Positions 22,555-23,556 of a stretch of 64,000 nt of DNA are shown piece by piece (positions within the stretch are counted from its first letter, which is position 1; each line of letters begins with the position of its first letter). The notes beneath the pieces are model-generated. The model was not told where the DNA came from, ran no database searches, and saw nothing but the letters and a program-made list of their open reading frames with translations. A program made the position numbers and the translations under genes. Where the stretch lies: contig NW_026889806.1 in assembly GCF_033153115.1 (NCBI RefSeq), forward strand, positions 4,030,001 to 4,094,000, given 5' to 3'. This DNA is from Saccostrea echinata. Lineage: Eukaryota.

Positions 22555-23556
22555 AAATCGTAAACTTACTTACCTTGTCAATGGTCATTTGCAAAATTAT
22601 TTTGTTAAAAAACATTCTGATTGTACACACAAGTACTCTGAAGTTGGTATTAAAAAGATGCTTGAGTTCCTGATTGACAATATCTATGTGGTTTTTGGAG
22701 ACCAGGTCTTCCAGCAATCTGTTGGAATTTCCATGGGTACCAATTGCGCCCCATTGTCAGCAGACCTATTTTTGTATTCATATGAAGCAGAATTTATTCA
22801 AAATCTTATACATGAGAAAAAGAAATCTCTTGCTGTGGCCTTCAACTCGACATTTAGATATATCGACGACGTGGTATCAATTAACAATAGTTATTTCCAA
22901 TCATATATGTCGACACGATATATCCCAGTGAGCTTGAAATAAAAAATACCACAGAGTCTGACACATCTGTTTCATATCTGGATATTTTACTAGAAAAAGA
23001 CGTTAATGGTAATCTAACAACAAAGCTTTATGATAAACGTGATGAGTTTAACTTTTCAATCGTCAACTTCCCTTACTTATGCAACAATATACCCTTATCA
23101 CCTGCATATGGGGTGTTTATCTCTCAGTTGATTCGAGACGCAAGAGCAAGCTCTACGTATGAACAATTTCTAAAACGGGTAAGTTATTGACAAACAAGTT
23201 GATGAAACAAGAATATTAGCAGTCTCGTTTAAAGTCATCATTTCTTAAGTTTTATGGTCGATACAATGACCTTGTCAGCGTATACAATATATCATTAAGT
23301 CATATGCTGAGTGACGTTTTTCATGCTTATTGTTAGGCCATTATTTACACACTGAATTGTTGACGGATTTTTCCGTTATTTACCGATCATGACAAGGAGC
23401 ACACGGCGGGTGTGACCGGTCGGCAGGGGATGCTCACTCCTCCATGGCACCTGATCCAACCTCTGTTTTTGGAGGTCCGTGTTTGCTCTGCTCCCAGTTT
23501 GTATTGTTTTAATGGACTTTGAGCTTGAATACTGTTCGTTATCACCAAATTTCATT
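22555..23556 (+). mobile_element. Penelope-like retroelement (Naiad-type), 5'-truncated RT plus 3' UTR, decayed
   Basis: FQQSVGISMGTNCAPLSADLFLYSYE and FRYIDD, then frameshifted LYDKRDEFNFSIVNFP...SPAYGVFISQLIR; ORF ends ...SDVFHAYC* with no C-terminal GIY-YIG; conserved 3' UTR. Confidence 0.85.

Follow-up and report, generated by a model that had tools for sequence, protein, structure and literature searches.

A Naiad remnant and the predicted fold in its 3' untranslated region

The stretch of the Saccostrea echinata genome analysed here (64,000 nucleotides (nt), hereafter the window) carries at 22559-23336 (+) a decayed, frameshifted C-terminal part of a reverse transcriptase (RT) open reading frame (ORF) with its stop codon, as read from three-frame translation. 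The host is a Naiad, an N-terminal-endonuclease Penelope-like element, and positions 22559-23333 were matched at 64-86% identity in a tblastn search with the 1026-aa ORF of a sister copy (locus L064). Downstream of the ORF remnant lie a motif at 23397-23488 (+) and a non-conserved tail at 23489-23555 (+), which reaches the sharp 3' end of the element as located by the ends of sister copies and taken to be the site where reverse transcription started. The repeat unit is longer than the motif and extends from about 22554 to this sharp end at 23555. Comparison with related elements indicates that the motif is a conserved, covarying RNA structure of the sense strand in the Naiad 3' untranslated region (UTR), referred to below as the fold. 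Relatives were collected as 80 metagenome loci (L numbers) through an alignment of RT C-termini, and their proteins were 39-65% identical.

The predicted strand order of the fold is closing helix, P3, hairpin, PK, P3, PK, P5 and closing helix. On its 5' side (23397-23406, +), the closing helix consists of GAGC (23397-23400), an unpaired A and CACGG (23402-23406), which pair with 23477-23488 (+), where CCGUG, UUU and GCUC follow each other; the two segments are helices 1 and 2 of the 17-sequence count described below. This helix has ten or more pairs and all nine pairs of its two segments are compensatory across families. The outer stem of the original prediction is kept as part of it, and the exchange of GAGC/GCUC for GGGC/GCCC between subfamilies, which is real in our alignments, represents its outer part.

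The first pseudoknot stem, P3, has its 5' strand CGGGUG at 23407-23412 (+) and pairs with CACCUG at 23448-23453, so that the CGGGUGU/GCACCUG pairing proposed earlier holds in the form CGGGUG/CACCUG. Among 18 families, 106 of 108 P3 cells pair, and compensatory changes are found at pairs 2, 3 and 5 in L123, L136, L127 and L119; the strands of distant families read CCAGUG/CACUGG, UGGGGG/CCCCUG and CGGGGG/CUCCUG. L136 and L127 share their P3 strands, and the four distant loci amount to three or four lineages. The second stem, PK, is formed by GGGAU (23427-23431, +) and 23454-23458, and it changes completely between families while staying paired: all five pairs are compensatory with 97.6% of cells paired in the 17 sequences, and 87 of 90 cells pair in the 18 families. 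In the window copy at 23397-23488 the last PK partner is an A (AUCCA), which leaves four pairs. The GGGAU/AUCCC pairing had been regarded as a competing one that might indicate a pseudoknot; the pseudoknot helix appears to be real, and it is not a mere competitor, PK being the best-supported helix of the fold. The 3' strands of both stems are continuous (23448-23458, +), with CACCUG of P3 directly followed by AUCCA of PK. Since P3 crosses PK, the core is an H-type pseudoknot, its strands being interleaved as P3-PK-P3-PK with covariation in both stems.

The joining strand GCAG (23423-23426, +) is conserved as RCAG and reads GCAA or CCA in distant families (alignments A3, A6 and A7). Loop L2 (23432-23447, +) contains a conserved GCUYAM block and then the short palindrome CCAUGG. 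On the 3' side of the pseudoknot there is an optional hairpin, P5 (ACCUC/GAGGU; 23459-23476, +), with a variable U-rich loop. The ACCUC/GAGGU pairing was already part of the original prediction and is borne out as P5, in which all five pairs are compensatory and 98.8% of cells pair in the 17 sequences. No separate P5 hairpin is present in L136 and L127, and L119 keeps one. The P5 loop is U-rich, with runs of five or six U, in most metagenome families (for instance L067, L070, L074, L087 and L132), and it is AAUUU or UGUUU in this genome. Two further pairings of the original prediction, AGGGG/CUCCU and GGUC/GAUC, did not stand up, with 65.8% of cells paired versus 65.1% in shuffles and 203 of 500 shuffles scoring as high. 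An AGGGG/CUCCU hairpin is suggested by minimum-free-energy folds of single copies and receives no support from the comparison.

An element that had been absent from the earlier description is a palindromic hairpin between the 5' strand of P3 and the joining strand. In the window it is the self-complementary 10-mer UGACCGGUCG (23413-23422, +), a 3-bp hairpin with the palindromic loop CCGG (23416-23419). A self-complementary block of 8-10 nt follows the P3 5' strand in 18 of 18 families, and in all of them its central four nucleotides are a strict Watson-Crick palindrome, realised by nine different tetranucleotides. The loop positions, helix 6 of the 17-sequence count, are self-complementary in 97.1% of cells, and switching from one palindrome to another requires two matched changes. 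A self-complementary loop is therefore kept through sequence change, which is the sequence signature of a kissing-loop or dimer linkage site. Since the loop pairs cannot form within a loop of four nucleotides and a hairpin needs no palindromic loop, pairing with a second copy of the hairpin is the simplest reading, so that it probably serves to join two RNAs. Loop L2 holds another short palindrome (CCAUGG, CCUAGG or UCCGGA) in 15 of the 18 families, which is always unlike the first and is absent from the three most distant families; we treat it as a lead only. The UCCGGA version is nearly absent from the genome, where five matches were obtained, each with one mismatch.

Since single copies fold no better than shuffles, relatives were sought, and the case for the fold rests on comparison and not on thermodynamics. 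Covariation was counted on 17 chosen family-level sequences instead of the 50 of alignment A5 in order to keep decayed copies out. As many as 94.7% of 552 cells were paired, compared to 74.6% in shuffles (none of 500 as high), and cells in which both sides had changed numbered 133, compared to 38.9 in shuffles (none of 500) and 8-24 when partners were slid by 1-3 columns. Compensatory change was found at 25 of 33 pairs. When 15 sequences were given to RNAalifold, compensatory changes supported 21 of the 27 pairs that it proposed, and it found the PK helix unprompted. MAFFT misplaces the P3 5' strand in L136 and L127 and a 3-nt insertion in L079 (alignment A7), and the covariance model shifts P3 of L123 by one column (A6), which gives rise to the "not paired" cells of helix 4 in the 17-sequence count; because of these misplacements, P3 and PK were counted by our own segmentation. 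Cells with G-U outnumbered those with A-C by 58 to 7, which indicates that it is the sense strand that folds, and pairing was 94.6% in the sense and 84.7% in the antisense orientation. Identity in the core was 0.671 versus 0.557 after shuffling one partner, while the 90-nt flanks were at baseline (0.600 versus 0.591 and 0.599 versus 0.588). The 100 nt on the 3' side of the fold, which span the tandem junction, fold no better than shuffles (z -0.70). Hence, the covariation across families, the bias of G-U pairs towards the sense strand and the conservation above that of the flanking UTR, which had been named beforehand as a test, all agree with what had been anticipated for this motif.

One could argue that the copies are alike simply because a young repeat has a common origin, and that the structure arises artificially when such relatives are aligned, given that copies of the young family are 95-100% identical and that single sequences are not more stable than shuffles when folded. 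However, the evidence comes from families at 39-65% protein identity that lie on separate metagenome contigs and whose flanks are at baseline similarity, and pairing is well above both the shuffle and the slide controls. We judge this explanation refuted and grant it next to no probability.

In searches with Rfam 15, there was no match at gathering level across the whole window and none at E ≤ 10 on 23300-23600. At E ≤ 10, positions 35500-35800 gave no match to any ribozyme family and nothing on the motif, and in nine metagenome loci no match was obtained on the motif at E ≤ 1, the few weak hits elsewhere being at chance level. These searches of the window, its copies and the nine related loci agree with the original prediction, which had seen neither a hammerhead core nor the pattern of the hepatitis delta virus (HDV) ribozyme. 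Of the hammerhead core strands, the fold conserves just CUGA, followed by variable bases; a GAAA strand is missing, and there was no Rfam match. HDV-like ribozymes have the strand order P1-P2-P3-P1-P4-P2, a nested double pseudoknot, which differs from that of the fold, and again there was no Rfam match. Twister, twister-sister, pistol, hatchet, hairpin and Varkud satellite (VS) ribozymes are set apart by Rfam models alone, none of which matched at permissive thresholds. A selenocysteine insertion sequence (SECIS) was also rejected, with no Rfam match and no in-frame UGA in the L064 ORF; according to the passages cited from Craig et al. 2021 (PMC8557442), selenoproteins occur among the clam Naiads, and SECIS are present in the 3' UTR of clam and spider Naiads. 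The same passages state that canonical hammerheads are absent in Naiads and that some carry a "half" hammerhead core in the 3' UTR. Full-text searches of the literature, whose scope did not include the per-family "HHR_half_core" notes in the supplement of Craig et al., turned up no account of such a conserved structure in the 3' UTR of Naiads. Altogether, the comparison suggests a new RNA family in a known role, that of a cis element at a retroelement 3' end. Two features are unusual, namely that a closing helix surrounds the pseudoknot and that one hairpin apparently needs a partner.

Copies, host element and distribution of the fold

Copies of the fold in the window were located with an nhmmer profile and with covariance model R1. 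The profile returned nine pieces that correspond to eight copies, one of them split by an insertion, and R1 recovered the same places. All eight copies listed in the original prediction were found within a few bases of where it had put them, and its written consensus agrees with the alignment. With up to three mismatches, a 16-base core occurs six times in the window versus 0.01 expected, and six was reached in none of 100 shuffles. According to nhmmer and R1, the copy described above extends over 23390-23497 (+), with the motif proper at 23397-23488 and an outer stem of the GAGC type. The GGGC-type subfamily is represented at 35593-35702 (+; R1 87.1 bits) and 49529-49639 (-; 89.1 bits), and an older GAGC-type copy lies at 55837-55946 (+; 70.9 bits). 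The copy at 61327-61441 (+; 82.8 bits) is 5'-truncated, without an ORF remnant upstream by tblastn, and in the one at 31595-31705 (-; 61.8 bits) the alignment shows that P5 and the closing helix have each lost their 3' half. A degenerate copy with an internal deletion was found at 53869-53968 (-; R1 18.3 bits, nhmmer E 6.9e-21). The split copy spans 28634-29332 (-) with an insertion of ~560 bp; R1 matches it at 29207-29332 and 28634-28731, and nhmmer at model positions 2-88 and 61-132. By tblastn, an ORF remnant lies upstream in six of the eight copies, ending ~50-120 nt before the nhmmer starts, and the remaining two are truncated just upstream of the motif.

The nature of the host was examined in the sister copy L064, which has an uninterrupted ORF of 1026 aa, from ATG to TAG, without internal stop. 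It shows a GIY-YIG match at aa 156-244 (E 1.7e-3; 19.0 bits, under the Pfam curated cut-off of 22.6) and an RVT_1 match at aa 767-874 (E 9.6e-4, also below the Pfam cut-off). There is no C-terminal endonuclease, and the ORF stops 150 aa past the RT match. Several homologues carry a precomputed PF01541, and the nearest named proteins come from a pearl oyster, at 55-63% identity. A GIY-YIG domain N-terminal to the RT is the Naiad arrangement in the passages cited from Craig et al. 2021 (PMC8557442). Thus, the assignment of the host to the hammerhead-less N-terminal-endonuclease Penelope-like elements, already made in the original prediction, fits the domain order of the L064 ORF and the lack of a hammerhead in the Rfam searches. 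Arrangements typical of Naiads were also seen: a tandem in L066, and in L064 a partial upstream copy (pseudo-long terminal repeat, pseudo-LTR or pLTR) and an inverted neighbour. In L064, a GGGC-type inverted copy of the fold at 6564-6694 (-) lies ~35 nt past the 3' end of a full-length young element, in a head-to-head setting, and the pseudo-LTR partial copy at 3074-3203, before the full-length ORF, starts inside the fold, in loop L2.

The family is young and very large. A DNA search of the genome gave 2,101 first-look candidates, of which all 40 that were scored were 95-100% identical, and a protein search gave 17,444. A 26-mer of the motif from the young subfamily has 6,422 exact genome copies. 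The search with R1 returned ~140,000 first-look candidates, a rough count that is consistent with eight copies per 64 kb, and the genome holds about 10^4 to 10^5 copies of the fold. The 5' ends of sister copies are scattered and there is a single 3' end, which falls on the same base, 70 nt past the fold, in 22 of 29 loci; the ends of all 29 fall within 12 nt. In three families, 70, ~108 (about 110) and ~222 (about 220) nt separate the fold from the 3' end, and no poly(A) tail terminates the genomic copies. In the head-to-tail tandem of L066, the sequence continues past the 3'-end base and the ATG of the next unit follows 14 nt later. Since the tandem runs on past the terminus, the 3' end of a copy would be an internal site of a tandem transcript.

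Among the 80 metagenome loci, a sequence profile detected the motif directly 3' of the ORF in 10. With R1, 16 loci were obtained at E ≤ 10, 14 of them with E ≤ 1.1e-12; the additions to the profile were four loci at E ~1e-13 and the two marginal ones, L123 and L122 (E 0.14 and 0.8). Covariance model R2 scores L122 at 1.7e-11, this locus being outside the training set but 99% identical to a training locus, and with filters off it gave no further significant match in the other 64 loci. In all 16 loci the fold is on the ORF strand, 27-241 nt past the stop codon. Three divergent versions (L136, L127 and L119) were recognised by eye and parsed with our own regular expressions. Two degenerate patterns had no matches in the viral_contigs or genome_contigs collections. 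The divergent versions, L136:1517-1565, L127:1434-1481 and L119:1706-1756, form a subtype from families at 39-43% protein identity, with a P3 made of a G-run and a C-run, GCUCAAAAAYGCAA in loop L2 and no second palindrome; in L136 a local hairpin, UGCG/CGCA, competes with PK. At L123:2575-2720 a long-range helix of 10 perfect bp encloses the fold, and the P5 loop measures 29 nt; the covariance model misaligns both. Other palindromes together with G-run/C-run pairs at L091:1870-1960 and L106:2640-2780, which stand outside all counts given here, may be a third version of the fold.

Possible roles of the fold

In Poseidon of Anolis, a hammerhead-bearing Penelope-like element of a different clade, reverse transcription starts internally, ~85-92 nt past the site where the hammerhead cuts, the hammerhead lies within the region bound by the protein, and genomic 3' ends coincide with cDNA start sites (Frangieh et al. 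2024, PMC11167929). In the same study, hammerhead cleavage needs the protein and is dispensable for insertion in vitro, and the protein is a predicted dimer by which both strands of the DNA are cut and extended. According to the passages cited from Cervera and de la Pena 2014 (PMC4209133), the helix III loop is palindromic in the hammerheads of canonical elements, which are believed to function as dimers. Since the Naiad fold lies at a position matching that of Poseidon, upstream of a fixed terminus that is internal in tandems, we take it to be the likely docking element by which the template is selected and the start of cDNA synthesis is positioned. The reading that we favour, to which we give about even chances, is a cis-acting Naiad RNA module that serves for docking of the RT-endonuclease upstream of an internal start and whose palindromic hairpin pairs in trans. 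The RT-endonuclease protein would bind the fold and so select its own RNA as template, and reverse transcription would start at a fixed downstream site (70 nt away here; about 110 and about 220 nt in two other families), at which every genomic copy would then terminate on its 3' side. Through its palindrome, the hairpin would pair with the same hairpin on a second RNA, or on the second motif copy of a tandem transcript, and a particle with two templates would be in keeping with the tandem and head-to-head arrangements in which such elements typically insert. A role in RT docking had been put forward in the original prediction; the position of the fold and the Poseidon precedent speak for it, the function itself being what we infer from that position and from analogy with a different clade of Penelope-like elements.

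This dependence on analogy is one of several points that weigh against the docking module. The fold was recognised in only 19 of the 80 related loci, counted whatever the length of their 3' sequence, and it is not universal even in close relatives, since L072 and L131 (55-60% protein identity; 450-790 nt past the ORF match) show no trace of it. P3 is near-invariant in most families, and its support comes from L123, L136, L127 and L119, the last three having been aligned with regular expressions. Single-sequence folding energies are ordinary (z -0.90 to +1.05 in five sense copies). A simple fixed-ruler mechanism is unlikely because the spacing between fold and 3' end varies. Finally, no RNA-seq reads run from the 3' end into the next unit, the depth being 0 at L066:5662-5796, so that these libraries showed no tandem read-through transcripts.

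The original prediction had also offered the fold as a ribozyme replacing the hammerhead. A new self-cleaving ribozyme, possibly protein-assisted and active only when two copies pair via the palindromic hairpin, would take over the role of the hammerhead in Naiads; we consider this possible though unlikely. The fold occupies the same place as the canonical hammerhead, near the 3' end and upstream of the cDNA start, and has a compact pseudoknotted core with invariant joining strands (CGGGUG, RCAG, GCUYAM) and freely varying helices, although invariant nucleotides are equally expected of a protein-binding site. The palindromic hairpin resembles helix III of the Penelope-like hammerheads, thought to be dimeric in the passages cited (PMC4209133), CUGA follows CACC in the fold, and some Naiads carry the "half" core mentioned by Craig et al. 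2021 (PMC8557442, cited passages). Self-cleavage would also be compatible with RT docking, as the Poseidon hammerhead sits inside the protein-binding region. However, Rfam 15 has no ribozyme-family match on the window, two copies and nine related loci, the CUGANGA...GAAA core is absent and the strand order is unlike that of HDV-like ribozymes.

RNA data over the 3' UTR came from three raw oligo-dT RNA-seq runs and one contig set. The depth peaks over the fold without a dip, both read orientations are equal, and there is no pile-up of molecule starts or ends in the three runs; loose read ends at one position correspond to length variants of the P5 loop. Absence of read ends is weak evidence, because the proven Poseidon hammerhead also leaves none (PMC11167929). 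At L066:5500-6300, depth is ~0 over the 5' part of the ORF, and 95-97% of the reads mapped there run on into unrelated sequence. Most of the RNA-seq signal comes from truncated copies that lie within other transcripts and are transcribed passively. At each of the three positions tested inside the fold, few copies break off, and the numbers are alike (20, 34 and 19 versus 6,422 intact); break points at the one in L2 where the pseudo-LTR copy of L064 starts are not enriched genome-wide, with 20 versus 6,422 intact. With neither sharp RNA ends nor a hot spot of copy ends at these positions, the claim that the fold replaces the hammerhead as a ribozyme found no direct backing, and RNA ends and break points argue against efficient self-cleavage. 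In its most specific form, in which an unknown class of self-cleaving RNA, active only as a hairpin-joined pair together with the element protein, replaced the hammerhead in Naiads as the most successful Penelope-like branch, the proposal seems to us rather doubtful. If it were true, one paired-ribozyme fold would be both the RT docking site and the site at which tandem transcripts are processed, in ~10^4-10^5 copies per bivalve genome.

A role in the life of the mRNA, either as a leader for translation, export or stability or as a 3' stabiliser of a transcript without poly(A) signal, appears to us a distinctly poor prospect. The fold would lie ~85 nt upstream of the start codon of the next unit in tandem or pLTR-driven transcripts, and, given that the next ATG is 14 nt past the previous 3' end, promoter and leader must lie in the preceding 3' region; Penelope and Chlamys start transcription in the pseudo-LTR according to the passages cited from Craig et al. 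2021 (PMC8557442), and the lack of a poly(A) tail at the 3' ends of genomic copies would suit a stabiliser. Such a role leaves the palindromic loop and the fixed 3' terminus unexplained. In addition, untranslatable 5'-truncated copies all retain the fold, although this is expected from 5' truncation under any model, and with a depth of ~0 over the 5' region of the next unit a leader role is not visible in these libraries. Conservation could instead act at the DNA level, the palindromes being half-sites of a pseudo-LTR promoter or transcription-factor site or of a GIY-YIG endonuclease site. The region must hold a promoter for the downstream tandem unit, palindromes are typical of sites for dimeric DNA-binding proteins, and the Penelope endonuclease recognises a fragment of its own element (work cited in the passages taken from Frangieh et al. 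2024, PMC11167929). Yet the palindromes vary among nine tetranucleotides and remain self-complementary throughout, a degree of change that no protein site would allow, four further helices covary, and the asymmetry of 58 G-U to 7 A-C cells points to one folded strand, so that we hold a DNA-level explanation to be very improbable.

Compared with known systems, the Naiad fold is closest in setting to the hammerhead and RT-binding region of Poseidon and canonical elements, both being structured RNA tens of nt upstream of a fixed cDNA start or genomic 3' end (PMC11167929, PMC4209133; cited passages). As far as those passages go, the canonical hammerhead shares with it a small self-complementary helix or loop that suggests paired action, within the same superfamily and with tandem and inverted insertions. 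The fold differs from a hammerhead in having a pseudoknot within a closing helix instead of a three-way junction and in that its palindromic hairpin comes first, not last. Moreover, the whole of the fold is within the 3' UTR, clear of the start codon, unlike the hammerhead at the pLTR-ORF junction.

The 3' UTR RNA of R2 and of "stringent" long interspersed nuclear elements (LINEs) is bound by the RT, is folded, with a pseudoknot in R2, and selects its own RNA for target-primed reverse transcription. Like the Naiad fold, it is retained in all 5'-truncated copies. In R2 and LINEs synthesis starts at the RNA 3' end, whereas the 3' end of Naiad copies appears to be internal and the fold has a self-pairing hairpin; the two show no sequence or Rfam relation. 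The core of telomerase RNA is an enclosing helix around an H-type pseudoknot, and the partner protein of the Naiad fold is what we take to be the closest known relative of TERT. The original prediction had called the fold telomerase-RNA-like, and this applies to its topology, an enclosing helix plus a pseudoknot, and goes no further: the Naiad pseudoknot has a long middle loop and no third loop. Neither a template-like repeat nor a triple-helix signature turned up in the closed domain, although no search was aimed at either. Retroviral dimerisation initiation sites are palindromic hairpin loops whose self-complementarity is kept while the sequence changes between lineages. The retroviral loop has 6 nt, while that of the non-viral Naiad hairpin has 4 nt and lies near the 3' end, inside a pseudoknot loop. 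Finally, the SECIS of clam and spider Naiads is likewise a structured RNA shortly 3' of a Naiad stop codon (PMC8557442, cited passages), but its architecture is different, Rfam gives no SECIS match for the fold and in-frame UGA codons are absent from the intact ORF.

Among the Penelope-like elements of invertebrates, Naiads are the most prolific, and their original description did not settle how they do without the hammerhead kept by all other endonuclease-bearing clades. The fold is a concrete candidate, defined in sequence, for filling that place, and its natural compensatory variation suffices for the design of mutants. As a docking element, it would tie in with the recent finding of an internal reverse-transcription start in Penelope-like elements and would offer an explanation at the RNA level for tandem and head-to-head insertion, in that the hairpin would be satisfied only by a second RNA. 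In practical terms, a covariance model with ~110 positions can be used in annotation to locate where copies of this repeat class terminate on the 3' side; ~10^5 copies of ~100 nt would make up ~1% of the genome.

Sequences next to the element

ARAGORN called no tRNA genes in the window. At ~23650-23700, ~95 nt past the Naiad 3' end, there is a tRNA-like string resembling an A box, which may be the head of a short interspersed nuclear element (SINE); ARAGORN calls no tRNA there. Upstream of the Naiad remnant, a stretch of 347 nt at 21666-22012 matches its own reverse complement at 81% and may be a foldback repeat or one resembling a miniature inverted-repeat transposable element (MITE). This self-complementary stretch is followed at 22038-22097 by a long low-complexity A-rich run.

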